NCBI GenBank assembly: GCA_002189035.1
Contig: NEEC01000021.1
Coordinates: forward strand, 930,001-994,000
Reading direction: 5' to 3'
From: Utricularia gibba
Lineage: Eukaryota > Plantae > Magnoliophyta
DNA length: 64,000 nt
Within the stretch, counting starts at the first letter, position 1, and every line of letters starts with the position of its first letter. The position numbers were made by a program, and so were the translations under genes. This document shows, piece by piece, positions 1 through 27,699 of the stretch. Under the pieces are notes generated by a model, which was not told where the DNA came from, made no database searches, and was given only the letters and a program-made list of their open reading frames with translations.

Positions 1-300
1 GTTATTATTTCGTAGAACTGTCTAGGAAGCTGCGTGATCATTTTGTTTAGTGTTGATTAAGTTATTATTAGTTGGGGTTTGTCTTAGATTAGGTACACAG
101 TTTTAACTCCGCCAGTGCAACCTTGCACTGCCAGTCCCAAGCCTGGACGAAGGAGGAGGGAAGACTGGGTTATTAGGAAGTCGAATTTCTTGTCTTGGCG
201 TTTGCATTTGCTTTCATGTTCTGAGACTTTTATTTCTTGGTGTTGATGCTTCCAAGTTTTGTGTCCATGCTTGTTCTCTGGATGAGAATCTTGCAACTCT
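1..300 (+). mobile_element. Copy 1 of an ORF-less repeat carrying a twister ribozyme (left end runs off the window)
   Basis: Colinear similarity to about 24420-24810: upstream aagttat..agtt..tag..taggt, the ribozyme core, downstream attag..ag.cgaatt.cttgt, then tgttgatgctt.caag..ttgt..catxxxxxttctc.gGATGAGAATCTTGC (14 identical nt at 281-294 and 24794-24807). No TSD, LTR end or RT ORF found, so the class is uncertain. Confidence 0.6.
98..167 (+). ncRNA. Twister ribozyme, type P1 (copy 1); predicted cleavage between U104 and A105
   Basis: All elements present in order: P1 CAGUUU(98-103)/AAGACUG(161-167); L1 UAA; P2 CUCC(107-110)/GGAG(152-155); T2 GC(111-112)/GC(141-142); P3 CAGUGCA/UGCACUG(113-130); P4 CCAG(131-134)/CUGG(143-146); L4 UCCCAAGC; catalytic-position G156, then A157; T1 CCC/GGG(158-160). 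Matches the rice twister-P1 architecture as I recall it (..UAACACUGCC..GCCGGUCCCAAGCCCGGAUAAAAGUGGAGGG..). Confidence 0.9.
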
Positions 301-1634: not shown

Positions 1635-4226
1635 ATGTCTAATGCCACCGTCGTTCCGTTCGATCGGGCGCACCAGACGATCATCTGCTACGCTCCCAAG
1701 TACATATCTACCAGAGGCGTATGGCAGGGGGACAACCCTTTGGATTTCGCGTTGCCCACCATTCTTCTGCAACTCATTCTCATTATTTTCATCACCCGCA
1801 TCCTCGTCTACCTGATGAAGCCCCTCCGGCAGCCCCGCGTCGTTCCCGAGATTCTGGTAAGAGAAATTATGATGATGAGCGATTGGAATGGGATGCCTGA
1901 ATGCTGTCCTGAGTTTGGTTGTGTGATGGGTGACAGGGAGGAATCATCTTGGGGCCGTCGGTGCTGGGGAGGAGCATCGTCTTCGCAGATGCGGTGTTTC
2001 CGTTAAGGAGTGTGATGATCATGAACACGATGGCGAATGTGGCTCTTCTGTACCAGCTTTTCCTGTTAGCTTTAGAAATGGATATCATGGTGGTGAAACG
2101 CATCGAACGGAAGGCGGTGGTCATCGCCATCGCCGGCATGGTGCTTCCATTTCTCATCGGCATCTCCTTCGCTCTCTTGATCCATACCAGAGTCCGGTAC
2201 CTGAAGCTTAGCACTTTCCTCCTCTTCGTCGGCGTGGTCCTCTCCGTCACAGCCTTCCGGTGCTCACCCGCCTCTTAGCGGAGCTCAAGCTCCTCAACAC
2301 CGAGATCGGGAGAGTGTCCCTGTCGACCGCCCTTGTCAGTGATTTCTTCGCGTGGGCGCTGCTGGCGTTCGCCATCGCCATAGCAGAGAACGATGAGCAG
2401 TCATCGATCTCCTTCTGGGTCATCCTCACCGCCGTCCTCTTCGTACTCTTCCACATCTGCGCCGTCCGCCCCCTTGTCATGTGGGTCATCAGAACAACCC
2501 CAGAAGGCGAATCCGTCAGCGAGCTCTGCCTCTGCCTCATCATGTGCGCCGTGATGATCTCCGGCTTCCTCGCCGACGCCATCGGCATGAACTCCTGCTT
2601 CGGCGCCTTCATGATGGGGCTCGTCATCCCCAACGGCCCTCTGAACGTGACCCTCATTGAGCGGCTCGAGGACTTCACTTCCACAGTCATGATGCCCCTC
2701 TTCTTCGCCATGATCGGACTCAAAGTCGACATCTTCTCTGTGTACGAGGCGTGGATATGGATCAGCTTGGGCTTCGTCATCATCCTCGCCAGTGTTGGGA
2801 AGATTGCAGGAACTCTGCTTCTTTCTCTGCACTACAAGATTCCCTTCTACGACGGCTTGACTCTTGGCATGCTGATGAACACAAAAGGGCTTGTTGAAAT
2901 GATCGTCCTCAACGTGGGGAGAGATCAGAAGGTGCGGAATTTCAGACTGATTACATGTTACAGAACGAAGCATAAGATCGTGTGTCTCCATTTTTGCAGG
3001 TTTTGGATGTTAAAGCTTTCTCTGTGATGGTGATTGCGGTGGTGGTGATGACGACTCTGATCACTCCTTTAGTCGGCGTGATGTACAAGCCCAGCAAGAG
3101 ATATGCCCACTACAAGAGGAGGACGATGCAGAGAGCGAAGCAGGAAGGGGAGTTCCGAGTTCTGGTTTGCGTCCACATGGCGAGAAACGTGCCCACCATC
3201 ATCAACCTCCTGGAAGCTCTGCATCCCAACAAGAAGTCTCCCATCTTCGTCTCCCTTCTCCATCTAGTGGAGCTCGCCGGACGGACATCGGCGATGATGG
3301 TCGGCGACAACCACGTCACCGGCGCGAACCACATGCACAGCCAATCGAACCACATCGTCAACGCCTTCGAAAACTTCCGGCACCACGTGAGCCACATCTC
3401 CATCAACTCCCTCACCGCTGTCTCTCCCTACTCCACCATCCACGAAGACGTGTGCAATGTGGCGGAGGATCAGCACTCCGCCTTCATCATCATCCCGTTT
3501 CATAAGCATCAGACTGTCGACGGCGGGATGGAGACCAGCAACCCGGCTTTCAGAGCAATCAACCAGAATGTACTGGCCACCGCCCCTTGCTCTGTCGGGA
3601 TCCTCGTCGACCGGGGACTCTCCGGGTCGATGAGATTGACCGGCTCCCAGTTGTCGCAAAGCGTGGCTGTCCTCTTCTTCGGCGGGCCGGACGACCGAGA
3701 GGCATTAGCCTGTGGGTGGCGGATATCTGAGCATCCCAACATCAACCTCACCGTGATTCGATTCCTGTGCGGCGTCCCTCAACGGAGCTTCTCCCGTACA
3801 GAAAGTGAGATTCTGACGATCTCCACGAGCGAAATCGACAGGGAAAGAGAGCTGGACGAGAACTACATCAGCGAATTCAGAGCAAGAACAATGTCGGATC
3901 CATCGATTTTTTTCACCGAAAGAGTAGTGAGCCATGGGGAAGAAACGGTTGCAGCTATACGATCAATAGATTCAACCCATGATTTGTTCATCGTGGGTCG
4001 CGGCCAGGGAATAGAAACCCCGGTGACGGCGGGGTTGACGGACTGGAGCGAGTGCCCGGAGCTGGGGCCGATCGGAGATTTGTTGGCAGCGTCGGATATT
4101 TCAGCAAGATACTCCGTTCTTGTGGTGCAGCAGTATCTGGGAATAGAGGCCTATGGAGATTGGACAGCGGTGCAACCCGGAAGCCCGAATCAATATGAAA
4201 TGGGCCCGGTCCGACCGGCAGTGTAA
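1635..4226 (+). CDS. CHX: Cation/H+ antiporter (CPA2, CHX15-like); 3 exons (1635-1856, 1937-2931, 3000-4226); apparent -1 frameshift at 2257-2258
   Basis: Motifs GVWQGDNPLDFALP, GLTLGMLMNTKGLVEMIVLNVG, APCSVGILVDRG, ECPELGPIGDLL; GT-AG introns. The frame switches from SVTAF to VLTRLLAELKLL with no intron between. Confidence 0.93.
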
Positions 4227-4698: not shown

Positions 4699-5706
4699 TC
4701 ACACCGTTTCGATTTTGCCGCGCTGCTGCGCCCGCCGGGAATTACGCTGCCTCCGTTGCCGGTAAGCAAAAGCACCGGCGCCGACCAGACACGCCACTCC
4801 GATGACTGCGAAGACCAACTCAGCCTCACCGCCTTCGATTTCACGGGACCTGTCCTCCTCACGCTGCTGCTGTATGAGCAACTCTTCTTTCTTCCGGACC
4901 GGAGCTTTTTGTACCTTTTCAGTATGATTGGAGTTCGCCTGTTTCTCTTCACGGTAGCGGGAAGAGGGAGGAGTCGGAGCTGGTTCATCGCTTTCAGGTT
5001 TGTCGTCATCGGGCTTCTGCTGTATGATTATGTCTTCTTCCTTGTCTTTCGGCTGGGTCTCTTCTTCGCTTCTTCTGTCTCCTGGCTTATCGTTATCATC
5101 GAGGTCGGACGCTTCATCGTGGGGAGATGTAGTTTTAGTGTCTTTTGAGGTTTCAGTCTGCGGTGGAGAGGTTGTCGTTGAATTTTTCTCCCCAGAAGCC
5201 ACTGTGTCCGTTGGCGGAGATGGGACTGGAGGTGAAGGCGGAGATGTGGCCTCCGATCCGTTGGTGGGTCCCGACTGCTTCCCTGGCGGCGAAGGCGGAG
5301 ACGTAGCCTGCGTTTCGTTGGCTGGTTGAACCAACGGTTCGGGCTGCTTCGCCTCAGGCGAATTCGGAGACGCGACCTCCGATTCGTTTGCGGGTCCCGA
5401 CTGCACCGCCGAAGGCGAAGGCGGAGACGTACCCTGCGTTTCGTTGCTGGGTAGACGCAACGCAACGGGCTGCGTCGCCTGAGGCGAAGGCAGAGGCCCG
5501 GCCTCCGATTCGTTCGTGGGTCCCGACTGCGCCGCCGGAGGCGAAGACAGAGACGCAGCCTGCGTTTCGTTGGTGGGTTGACGCAACCCAGCCGGCTGCG
5601 ATGCAGTAGCGGAAGGCGGGGAATCTTCAGACAAAATTGTGATGGGAAACATCAGGAATGCGGCGGCGATGCAACCATACACAAGATTACGATGAATCCA
5701 ATTCAT
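4699..5706 (-). CDS. Single-exon Pro/Ser/Thr-rich type-I membrane glycoprotein with 3 x 42-aa ectodomain repeats (an upstream in-frame ATG exists at 5871)
   Basis: Hydrophobic N-terminus after MNWIHR; repeats with 126-bp period (cgtttcgt at 5311, 5437, 5563); many N-x-S/T sequons; TM segment LVFAVIGVACLVGAGAFAY followed by a basic tail. Confidence 0.75.
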   Translation of the reverse strand: MNWIHRNLVYGCIAAAFLMFPITILSEDSPPSATASQPAGLRQPTNETQAASLSSPPAAQSGPTNESEAGPLPSPQATQPVALRLPSNETQGTSPPSPSAVQSGPANESEVASPNSPEAKQPEPLVQPANETQATSPPSPPGKQSGPTNGSEATSPPSPPVPSPPTDTVASGEKNSTTTSPPQTETSKDTKTTSPHDEASDLDDNDKPGDRRSEEETQPKDKEEDIIIQQKPDDDKPESDEPAPTPPSSRYREEKQANSNHTEKVQKAPVRKKEELLIQQQREEDRSREIEGGEAELVFAVIGVACLVGAGAFAYRQRRQRNSRRAQQRGKIETV

Positions 5707-23335: not shown

Positions 23336-23610
23336 GGCAGCGACGGAGGAACAGCGGAGAAGACACTTCCGTTCTTCCAAAGGTGATGGGTTAGTTCAGA
23401 ATGGGCATCATCAAAATCCCATTGAAGAACAGTAAGCTCCTGGACACTTTGCTTTAGTAGCAGTAAGCCGTTAGGCTCTTATTGGGCCGAACTACTAAGT
23501 GGGCTTTCATGGACTCTTCATTTTTTGTAATAGTAAATAGCTCATTGGGCCTTATTGCTTAATGGGCTTCTGAACAAATTCAGGATTCCTCCTCCCCGCG
23601 TACTTCTAGG

Positions 23611-24810
23611 TATATAAACACCCCAGTTCTTCTTTGTTTTGCAGTGTGTAGAATGGAGTGTGGGGTTTTTTAGTTCATAGATAGGGAATAGGGATTTCCG
23701 AGGAGAGATTTAGGGTCAGGTACGTCTGCCGCTTTCTCATCTTTCCTATTTCGGTTGTTTTTTTTTTTAATCAGGATTGCTTGTTGGTCTTCCTTCGTTT
23801 TGATACCTCAATTTTATGTGCGGTTGTCTTTATTTTTTAGCAATCTGAAGTTGTTGGAGATTTTGCGTTTGGTTTATGTTTTTGATTCTGTGTTCTCAAC
23901 TGTTTGTTAGTAATGTATGAACAATATCTTTAATTGCCTTGGAATTTCGTGTTTTTTTATAATTCTTCCAATATGGAACGAGCTGAACCGTTGTTTCGTG
24001 TTTCTGTTGATAGTCTTGTTGAACTGTGCTCGGTCTGAGTGTTGATCTTGGTTTCTTATGCAGGAATGGCGCTGGTCGTTGCGATTGCCAGTTTCCTCCA
24101 TTCATCCAAAAAAGAAAGAAAAAAAGGCGAAAAAAAAAGAAAAAGAAAAAAGAGGCCTAGAAAAAAGAACATTGCCAGCCTTCCCCGCGATCAAATCAGT
24201 CATTCCATCCCACTGGAATCGCTATAGCGGTTTATTACCACCTTTTTCCATGTGAATCTGCAAGGCTTGGCATTCATCCTCTATCATCTTCTGTCGCAAC
24301 TCAGGTGGCCTTCTCTGATTTTAGCCAATGTATGATAAGGGGTTAGTTGGTATTTTAGGGCTATTTATGGGCTAATTTATCAGCCTGTAGATGCTTGTTA
24401 ATGTTGGAGAAGTTATTCGTTTAGGGCTATGCATACCCTCAAGCTATCTGTTTGAATCTATTTATTCAAGGGGTATTCAAGTTATCAGTTTAGGTCTATG
24501 TAGAGTAGGTGCAAGGTTTTCAACTCCGCCTGTGCAATGTTGCGCAGCCAGTCCCAAGCCTGGTCGAAGGAGGAGGGGAGACTTGATAATTAGTGAGCCG
24601 AATTGCTTGTGCCTTGTTGTATAACTTTGGTATTTGTAGTGAAGATGCGTCTTTTTTAATTTTGATTGATCCTTGAGTGTCCTTCCTCTAGGATCGAACT
24701 GTGCATATAGTTTGTCACAATGTGTGATTGAAGTTCCAGCATTTAGTTTGTGCTGTTGATGCTTTCAAGTGTTGTCTTCATCTTTCTTCTCAGGATGAGA
24801 ATCTTGCGTC
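23611..24810 (+). mobile_element. Copy 2 of the twister-bearing ORF-less repeat, within a putative spliced non-coding Pol II transcript (boundaries uncertain)
   Basis: TATATAAA at 23611; donor CAG|GTACGT (23720); acceptor ttatgcag (24063); A-rich tract at about 24106-24170; weak donor at 24305; acceptor ttcttctcag (24793). Homology to 1-300 spans about 24420-24810. Confidence 0.5.
24514..24584 (+). ncRNA. Twister ribozyme, type P1 (copy 2); predicted cleavage between C24521 and A24522
   Basis: P1 AGGUUUU/GAGACUU; L1 CAA; P2 CUCC/GGAG; T2 GC/GC; P3 CUGUGCA/UGCGCAG; P4 CCAG/CUGG; L4 UCCCAAGC; G24573, A24574; T1 GGG(24575-24577). 50 of 57 core nt are identical to copy 1. Confidence 0.88.
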
Positions 24811-25413
24811 AAGTCTTATACTCCACAAGAGGTATCGGCAAGACAAAGAGATAAGCAGTGGGAGACAGCAAAGCAAGATTTACGGCACGGTGCTGTTACA
24901 GGCTATTAAAAATGGTAAACGTACACAGACAGAACCATGCAGTTGTGGTTACAGAAGCAGCAAGCTCTGTAAACAACCATACTGCATTCGCATATTGGCA
25001 ATGTCAACACATTGTGCTTGTGTCGCTTTATCCTGACGGCAAAAAAGATGTGGTTTGGTGCGAAGTTTGAAGAATTGAGATCGAGGTGGGATTGCCCATA
25101 GGCAATTGAAAGTGAGGCTGATTTTTCGCACTTTCGGGAACTCTTCTTGGCTTCAAAACAAATTGGATCCCCAATCTACATGTGTCAGGCCGTAAGGGGC
25201 CGTAAATTGTGTTGGATTTAATTTCAATGGTGACAACAGCATGCGTATAAAAGCGCTCAACTCCGCTGTTTCGGAAGCTTCTCGTGTCACTCCGTTCTTC
25301 TCGGCTGCTGGTTTACTTCTCTCTTTTGAGGGGTGCTGCTGGTTCTGCTTCTAACATATCAGGGACTAGAATTCTTTCTAAGTGGGCTTCCGCCGGTTTG
25401 ATCCTCTACGCCC

Positions 25414-27699
25414 ATGAATTGCCTTCAGAGCTTCCCCAGGTTCTGATCTTCATTACGCCAACCAAGACAGATTCTTATCCCTTTCTTACGAAGGATCTTA
25501 CTTTTCTTTGTCTTTTTGTTTCCCAGCTCCTTAGCGTTGCCGTCTTGGGCGCCCAAATGTTCCCTTCCGGTTGTCATGTTTCAGAGAAGAAATTTACCAG
25601 TCGGGGGCGCGGGCGCTATCAATTCCCCCTCCGGCTCCCGTATTGTCGCTAAGGTAATATATACGTCCCCGGATTGGCTTTTAGATGTTTCACCTCGAGC
25701 AGGGGAATGGGTCTTTTTTCTCTCTTTGGCTTCTTTTGTTTTTAGGCTGCCCAAGGCCCTGCGCCCAGTACAGAAAACGAGGCTTCCAAACTGGAGGACA
25801 AATCTGAAACGTACAGCCATGACATGACTGCTGCTATGGGAGCTGGTGATTAAAATCCTTGCTTACAGCGTTGCTTACAAATTGTAACTTCTGTTTATCT
25901 TGTAGTTGATACTCGAATGCAGTGCTAACATATCGGCATGAACTTGGGATGAATTACAACTTCATTCGACCTGATTTGATTGTGGGATCATGCCTACAGG
26001 CAAGCATTTGAAGATTCAATGGCCTCCTCTCCTGCTTTTTCATTCTCATTTCCTGGATCAACTTTGTGCAGACTCCTGCAGATGTGGATAAGCTTCGCAG
26101 TATTGGAGTGAAGACCATATTTTGCTTACAAAAAGACTCAGATCTCGAGTATCCACACTCAACATTTTCTTGACTTCATATGTATTGATTTGAATACTGT
26201 GTTTTTTTTTTTCTAGCTTCTATGGCTGTCGGGGTGCGGTTTTTGGATTTCTGTATCGTCCTTAACTGCAGGATTTCAGATATTTTGGTGTTGACATCTC
26301 TGCTATTCGTCGATACTGCGACAGCTTCAGTGACATTCAGCACATACGTGCTGAAATAAGGCATGCTCCATCAGCAACTGCCTTATGTTTGTGCTTCATT
26401 TCATTCTTTCCTCATTGCATCATGTCTCTCAACTCAGGGATTTTGATGCATTTGATCTTCGATTACGCCTTCCGGTGGTGGTCAGTAAACTCCACAAGGC
26501 CATCAATAGGAACGGTGGAGTTACCTACATACACTGCACTGCTGGTCTTGGGAGAGCCCCGGCAACCGCTGTAAAATATGTGTCTTACCTTCTTTACATT
26601 CAGTCACTGAGGATGTAACTCTTGTCTGTTTGTTTTATACTGCAGGTGGCTTACATGTTTTGGGTGTTAGGGTATAAGTTCAGCGAGGCACACGAACTGC
26701 TCACGGTAAATATTCGTTTCCCTTCAGCTTATAGGCTCTGGAATACAAGCTTCTATGCAGTTTTACTCAACCTGATCTGCAGAGCAAGCGGCCATGCTTC
26801 CCAAAACTTGACGCGATCAAGAGCGCAACTGCTGATATCGTAAGGACTTGTGCATTGTAACCTGCTCATCCATTGCAATAAACTGTGTTTGCACGTATTG
26901 TTAAAGCTTACAGGTCTTGAAAAGAAGCTCATAAAGTTGACTTGGAGAGGTGAAAATTGCTCGAATGTGGCGGTTTCTGGACTCGACGTTGGATGGGGAC
27001 AGGTATTGCTATGAAATGATGCAGCATTGAACTGTTCTTCTCACCAACTGCATTCCCTTTAACTGCTTACAGAGAATACCTTTAGCATACGACAAGGAGC
27101 AAGGTTTATGGATCCTCCGCAGAGAACTTCCGGCAAGTATTTCTAGTCATTCTCTTGCCCAACTTTTATCTCTGACTTTAGACAGGTCTACCTTAAAGTT
27201 CACAGAGTATAGAGTGATTTAGAATGGGAAACAACATGAGAAGTTGCTGAAGAGTTAAAATTCTGGAAAACTTGTGATGTGGGAGACTAAGCTCATTCAC
27301 AAGGACGATAAGATGTCGAATGCGAGCTTGTGTCGAAGCTCGACCAACTTCCTAAGTTTTTAGTCTCTTTGTTGGCCAGGAAGGAAGATATGAGTACAAG
27401 TACATAGTAGATGGGGAATGGTTGTGCAATGAGAGTGAGCTTGTCACTTCCCCAACGGAGACGGCCATGTCAACAACTATGTTACGGTAATGAGCAGTAG
27501 CAGCAGTTTGAGCATATCATACCAAGGTCCCTGCGAAGCATTCACTTGTAATGTTGGTTTTCAGGTGGTTAATGACGACACCGATAGCCGGAATTCCGAG
27601 ATACGATGCAGATTGGCCGGCGATGACCCTCTTCTGTCCTCGGATGAACGCCTGCTTATCAGACAGTTCCTTGAAACCGCTGATCCAGGCGAGGATTAA
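25414..27699 (+). CDS. SEX4: Phosphoglucan phosphatase DSP4/SEX4; 13 exons; apparent -1 frameshift at 27450-27453
   Basis: MNCLQSFP start, [25 protein letters not shown], catalytic [13 protein letters not shown]48 [19 protein letters not shown]. Confidence 0.95.

Follow-up and report, generated by a model that had tools for sequence, protein, structure and literature searches.

Two probable type-P1 twister ribozymes of a small plant family keep their fold while the surrounding sequences diverge

Among self-cleaving RNAs, the type-P1 twister ribozyme (RF03160; Roth et al. 2014) is the class to which the two copies discussed here belong. Eight twister candidates have been listed in rice, with cleavage shown for two of them (PMC10226581), and many flowering plants proved to have active twisters in a high-throughput assay (PMC11662667); no biological role is assigned to flowering-plant twisters in either report (PMC10226581, PMC11662667). 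Two kinds of repeated element also offer points of comparison: the 5' ends of Perere-3/RTE retroelements carry twister variants that are active in retroposition (PMC8501958; PMC7761336), and plant elements devoid of ORFs exist in which each repeat bears a ribozyme (PMC4918200).

Here we describe two twister copies of Utricularia gibba, located in the stretch of 64,000 nucleotides that was analysed as a whole (the window). With the RF03160 twisters, including the rice Osa-1-4, they have in common the P1-P2-P3-P4 order, the L4 loop GUCCCAAGCC, the GAGGG strand and the AA that follows the cut, as well as the optional P3 hairpin and a flowering-plant host. They differ from them in that copy 2 has C and not U at N-1, and in that both score 3-10 bits low. 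The two copies are additions to the known twister class.

An earlier note, made from the letters of the DNA, had placed two twisters in the window, and both were recovered by the Rfam model. In E-value mode, cmscan matched RF03160 on the + strand at 100-164 (copy 1; 64.5 bits, E 1.6e-14) and at 24517-24581 (copy 2; 57.5 bits, E 1.2e-12), the alignment spanning model positions 1-68, that is the full model, in both. Together with the minimum-energy fold and a check of the pairs, this delimits copy 1 to 98..167 and copy 2, all 19 checked pairs of which are canonical, to 24514..24584, both on the + strand. The scores fall 3-10 bits short of the RF03160 gathering score of 67.2 bits, which is a working threshold and not a property of the RNA; a default Rfam scan of the window is blank because both copies lie under this cut-off. 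At E <= 1, no Rfam family other than RF03160 at these two places was found in the whole 64-kb window, and neither sensitive BLAST, a motif search nor Rfam at the same E-value revealed further twister copies in it. The L4/P4 motif CCNGTCCCAAGCCNGG occurs in the window at copies 1 and 2 only, 0.18 occurrences being expected by chance.

Minimum-energy folding recovered P1, P2, P3 and P4 of copy 1 at -29.1 kcal/mol (z -3.1), and gave the same helix layout for copy 2 (z -1.26). On the + strand of copy 1, P2 is formed by 107-110 with 152-155, P3 by 113-119 with 124-130 and P4 by 131-133 with 144-146. The strands of two pseudoknots, T1 (the CCC of L4 with the GGG of the 3' strand; 136-138 with 158-160) and T2 (the GC after P2 with the GC of L4; 111-112 with 141-142), are complementary in both copies, under a pairing scheme that we take to be that of the published twister structures. 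P1 is paired through another sequence in copy 2, as the earlier note had proposed: read directly, 24514-24520 with 24578-24584 (AGGUUUU with GAGACUU) form 7 pairs, 3 of them G.U. The most stable P1 of copy 1 (CAGUUUU with AAGACUG) pulls N-1 into the helix, and P1 in the Rfam register has one mismatch there. The conserved unpaired bases, namely A+1, A+2, the L4 loop GUCCCAAGCC and the GA of GAGGG, match the Rfam consensus in both copies. The twister model predicts cleavage of the + strand RNA between U104 and A105 in copy 1, and between C24521 and A24522 in copy 2. Copies 1 and 2 are very probably genuine type-P1 twister self-cleaving ribozymes, members of a nuclear family of about six, and we infer that each of them cuts itself.

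Position by position, the cores of the two copies (104-160 and 24521-24577, both 57 nt) differ at exactly the seven sites given in the earlier note, with no indel. The N-1 base changes from T to C (104), A>T at 114 together with T>A at 129 turns a P3 pair from A-U to U-A, the P3 loop has C>T at 121 and C>G at 122, A>G at 127 converts U-A to U.G at pair 116:127, and one linker base changes from A to T (147). The swap and the U.G change leave P3 canonically paired in both copies, while P2, P4, the L4 loop and both pseudoknots proved identical, again as claimed, and so did the GAGGG strand. Counted over P2, P3, P4 and both pseudoknots, each copy has all of its 19 pairs canonical, and none of the seven differences touches a conserved unpaired base. 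When seven random core substitutions were simulated, all were harmless (no pair broken, no conserved unpaired base touched) in 1.25e-4 to 1.4e-3 of the trials, a range set by the transition bias; with survival of helices P2-P4 as the sole requirement, the fraction was 0.04.

Natural variation in P3, in the linker and at N-1 was read from metagenome relatives, which were used solely for this: 79 metagenome loci have the exact same core, with no similarity of their flanks to the plant units, and viral contigs contain no match to the core pattern. Among related metagenome twisters sharing the core, the A-U to U-A switch of the P3 pair is also found in 2 of 51, and either A or U occupies the first linker position among the 51 distinct relatives. 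N-1 is U in nearly all relatives with a proper P1, and C in copy 2; changes at this position are broadly tolerated in high-throughput cleavage tests (PMC11662667). A second copy with compensatory changes, as would be expected for any genuine ribozyme family, is not a new kind of finding.

The core has changed less than its surroundings. Over 75 nt on each side, 44 of 143 flank positions are substituted (~31%; 19/70 and 25/73 per side, or 27-34% diverged), to which 14 gap columns are added, against 7 of 57 (12%) and no indel in the core (Fisher p = 0.007), the flank divergence being 2-3 times that of the core. The upstream flanks are 73% alike over the 75 nt, with 65-103 resembling 24482-24520. 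BLAST aligns 65-271 with 24482-24687 at 71.6% and 229-315 with 24742-24825 at 77%, and these two blocks (72% and 77% in round figures) correspond to the patchy, indel-containing alignment that had been reported. On the + strand, the stretch homologous between the two surroundings thus runs from 65 to 315 around copy 1, the conserved block 229-315 included, and from 24482 to 24825 around copy 2, where ~95 extra bases separate the twister from the second block (24742-24825). The contig of copy 1 aligns on 24518-24610 and 24754-24807 of the copy 2 region.

Further upstream, a second short multi-copy piece lies at 24251..24313 (+ strand), with a DNA depth of ~2.5x, and its part 24259-24313 is also found in the copy 1 contig ~123 nt upstream of the twister, before the start of the window. 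The homology of the units spans at least 24259-24825 and reaches upstream of the cut site. Since the neighbouring genes of the two copies are unrelated, the units were moved or copied on their own. Each ribozyme probably sits within a short non-coding unit whose duplication took place at the DNA level.

Piece 24251-24313 also occurs in other RNA and DNA contigs with unrelated flanks. A microRNA-like origin was considered for it and rejected, no hairpin being obtained on folding (z +1.3 and +0.3). Just upstream of copy 2, TTTAGG(G/T)CTAT is present three times with a spacing of 66-69 nt (24354-24499), and related TTTAGG motifs precede the twister in other copies; the count of TTTAGG(G/T)CTAT over the whole window is not significant.

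The number of copies was addressed with contigs from sequencing runs of this organism, two of DNA and two of RNA, placed on 23400-25600 at 80% likeness. DNA depth in 24510-24583 amounts to 44.5 against a single-copy value of 9.06 in run X1, and to 167.8 against 43.9 in run X5, and this depth of 4-5x the single-copy value is confined to the core region. Besides copies 1 and 2, at least four further contigs match at this likeness, and they do so over ~24512-24610 only. They are near single-copy depth in both DNA runs, which argues that they are plant DNA and not a contaminant, and the 30 nt at their loose ends are similar to the flanks of copies 1 and 2, at less than 80%. Within 24544-24577, the part for which the core differences among DNA copies were listed, the copies vary almost only at P3 sites 24544/24546 and linker sites 24564/24565; one copy differs at the L4 site 24556, and one further copy leaves the alignment at the linker, after 24563. 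The genome contains about six twister copies, and the ribozyme is their best-kept part. The earlier note had asked how core and flanks decay across the genomic copies, and as far as the contig data reach, the core is not decaying like the flanks.

The window also contains a CHX cation/H+ antiporter gene (1635-4226), MutS, a plant NMP1, a SWIRM protein gene and others. The best relatives of the CHX antiporter are from Lamiales, at only 65% identity. Taken together, the genes around the copies suggest a fast-evolving asterid with a compact genome, probably one of the Lamiales. Copy 1 sits 1.5 kb before the CHX start codon. No twister was found upstream of the CHX15-like genes of Penstemon, Primulina and Rehmannia (Lamiales), genes whose orthology is not established; this is weak evidence, in which nothing points to an old host element kept in synteny. 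The interval from copy 1 to the CHX gene contains an AT-rich stretch of 300 nt that is bounded by 50-nt inverted repeats with 94% identity (1001-1050 / 1255-1303), and the segment 1001-1303 looks like a miniature inverted-repeat element. A tandem array with units of ~61-75 nt occupies 705-980, and 126-nt tandem repeats at 5229-5600 lie within a 390-aa minus-strand ORF that has no Pfam family.

Copy 2 is placed between a small transcript and a dual-specificity phosphatase gene of the same strand, which begins ~750 nt further on and whose RNA depth climbs from 25324. The RNA evidence consists of assembled contigs and not of raw reads. The small transcript (23646..24408, + strand) is represented by a 476-nt contig of run X16 that starts at 23646 right after an adapter ending in GGGG, and that carries an A-tail at its other end. 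Exon 1 (23646-23716) is joined to exon 2 (24061-24408) across a GT..AG intron (23717-24060; contig joint 23716>24061), exon 2 contains an A-rich tract (24097-24156) and is followed by a non-templated A-rich tail, and a TATA box (TATATAAA, 23611..23618, + strand) lies ~30 nt before the transcript start. No significant Pfam family was found in the ORFs of this transcript or in those around both twister copies. Thus a small, TATA-driven, spliced and non-coding RNA polymerase II transcript is real, and it ends 109 nt before copy 2. As its sole RNA contig stops short of the twister, a placement of copy 2 inside an intron of this transcript receives no support. Several TGGGCY (site-II-like) motifs are present at 23440-23570, between a minus-strand adenylosuccinate-synthetase-like ORF and the TATA box at 23611, which suggests a two-way promoter.

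A cleaved RNA was found for a sister copy. It is a 357-nt contig of run X16 (depth 31), in which an adapter, ...CGATATACGGG, is joined exactly to the position matching A24522 (A+1), the first base past the predicted cut. The adapter is the same as that at the 23646 start and ends in GGG; its string gave no literature match. Over 56 nt, 4 differences separate the contig from copy 2, and its downstream flank resembles that of copy 1 but is not equal to it, which makes it a third copy. It provides direct evidence that, in this family, natural transcripts end where the twister should cut, a cut that may also have occurred after RNA extraction. The RNA of yet another copy is uncleaved, a 725-nt contig of run X11 running through the twister, and no RNA contig covers the twister of copy 2 itself at >= 95% likeness.

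The structure-neutral character of the seven changes, the slower divergence of the core, its conservation in multiple copies and the sister RNA end at A+1 all support the view that the RNA fold has been kept by selection, the core remaining nearly constant while the flanks drifted. The earlier note's proposal of a fold maintained by selection, with self-cleavage being of consequence for the element or its host, is supported by the same simulation, core/flank contrast, copies and sister RNA end.

We propose that, once the + strand is transcribed, the RNA would fold into P1-P4 and the two pseudoknots and cut itself between N-1 and A+1 (U104|A105 in copy 1, C24521|A24522 in copy 2). The upstream piece would be left with a cyclic-phosphate end, and the downstream RNA would start with a 5'-OH and carry the folded ribozyme at its head. 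Because copy 2 lies 109 nt past an A-tailed end and ~750 nt before a gene of the same strand, the cutting of read-through RNA appears to be its most likely role: copy 2 would cut RNA polymerase II read-through RNA beyond the poly(A) site. Such a cut could aid termination and insulate the downstream gene, or it could set free a downstream RNA that is stable and uncapped. In depth, the sister copy's downstream product is close to the transcript upstream of copy 2 (31 vs 28), which favours a stable RNA, as a stable product fits this better than a pure role in termination. Tentatively, the twister may have a function of its own in a small, lineage-specific family of non-coding genes that RNA polymerase II transcribes in this compact plant genome. 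From its position ~110 nt past the poly(A) site, it would cut the nascent read-through RNA, and thereby either stop transcription ahead of the following same-strand gene or liberate a stable, uncapped, ribozyme-headed RNA. If this is true, it would be the first natural role assigned to a plant twister, and the twister would be a natural ribozyme terminator or insulator. The small family, with its constrained core, its natural RNA end at the cut and its defined position, is a tractable case in which ribozyme-aided termination or insulation and the release of uncapped RNA are directly testable.

The main rival explanation, which we consider improbable, is that the twister heads a non-autonomous non-LTR retroelement, RTE-like or SINE-like, so that cleavage would trim the RNA of the element from host read-through and the copies would have arisen by retroposition. 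The twister variants of Perere-3/RTE 5' ends are a precedent for it, the sister-copy RNA does start exactly at A+1, homology among the metagenome relatives with the same core begins exactly at A+1 as well, and the plant units are dispersed without their neighbour genes (CHX after copy 1, the phosphatase after copy 2). Copies made by retroposition of the cleaved RNA would start at A+1, however, and the plant homology runs upstream of the cut (65-103 with 24482-24520, and 24259-24313 shared with copy 1); at three other copies, too, the loose ends are similar to this upstream sequence over 30 nt. Furthermore, the ORFs downstream encode the CHX antiporter and the dual-specificity phosphatase, not a reverse transcriptase, the copies number only about six, a poly(A) or simple-repeat tail and a target-site duplication were not seen, and the plant flanks are without similarity to the metagenome elements.

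That the copies are functionless, decaying relics which look intact by chance or through recent origin is very improbable. Both scores are below the Rfam gathering cut-off, the copy 2 fold is barely better than that of shuffled sequence (z -1.26), and copy 2 has C where nearly all relatives with a proper P1 have U at N-1, but seven changes would all be neutral with a chance of ~1e-3 or less, divergence is 2-3 times greater in the flanks than in the core, the core is retained in about six copies and the RNA of a sister copy has its 5' end at the cut site. A retrozyme-like element, of which the two copies would be the repeats and which would give a circular RNA after double cleavage, has a precedent in the ORF-less plant elements with a ribozyme in each repeat and in two metagenome relatives (L038 and L074) with 450-nt tandem units that each contain a twister, but is close to excluded at these two loci: at least five unrelated genes lie within the 24.4 kb that separate the copies, there is one ribozyme per locus and two twisters in 64 kb, neither a primer-binding site, a polypurine tract nor a short two-twister unit was found, and the flanks are 70-80% alike, whereas near-identity would be expected for repeats of a single element.

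The metagenome relatives have features of their own. About 54 loci (L003 and L005-L079, mostly on Ga0081606 contigs, e.g. L047:2248-2355) share a ~107-nt unit that starts exactly at A+1 of a twister with this core and finishes past a short hairpin (CGACGCTAATCA...), with unrelated flanks on both sides. These units look like tiny twister-headed insertions, in line with the 5'-end twisters of RTE/Perere-3. Two twisters lie 443-457 nt apart in ~450-nt tandem units at L038:688-1193 and L074:2225-2737, which may be the twister counterpart of the tandem hammerhead retrozymes of animals. A poly-A run immediately precedes P1 in related loci, among them L001, L002 and L033.

Returning to our reading of the plant copies as ribozymes within short, DNA-duplicated non-coding units, the comparison with known systems can be drawn as follows. 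The hammerhead retrozymes (PMC4918200) are likewise ORF-less, ribozyme-bearing repeated units of a plant genome, but their ribozyme is of another class and two ribozymes are found within ~1 kb, whereas the loci described here carry a single ribozyme each and lie 24.4 kb from one another. The Perere-3/RTE twisters of Schistosoma mansoni (PMC8501958, PMC7761336) also cut at the 5' edge of the ribozyme, which stays on a downstream RNA starting at A+1, and they too exist as dispersed copies. Unlike them, the plant units show homology upstream of the cut and encode P1 themselves; moreover, they have no reverse-transcriptase ORF, a very low copy number and no visible target-site duplication. Compared with the known plant twisters, the copies described here belong to a family of about six and to a duplicated non-coding unit located just past a poly(A) site, with a natural RNA end at the cut. 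To our present knowledge of the literature, no such small family, no location of this kind behind a poly(A) site and no natural RNA end at the cleavage position have been described for plant twisters.
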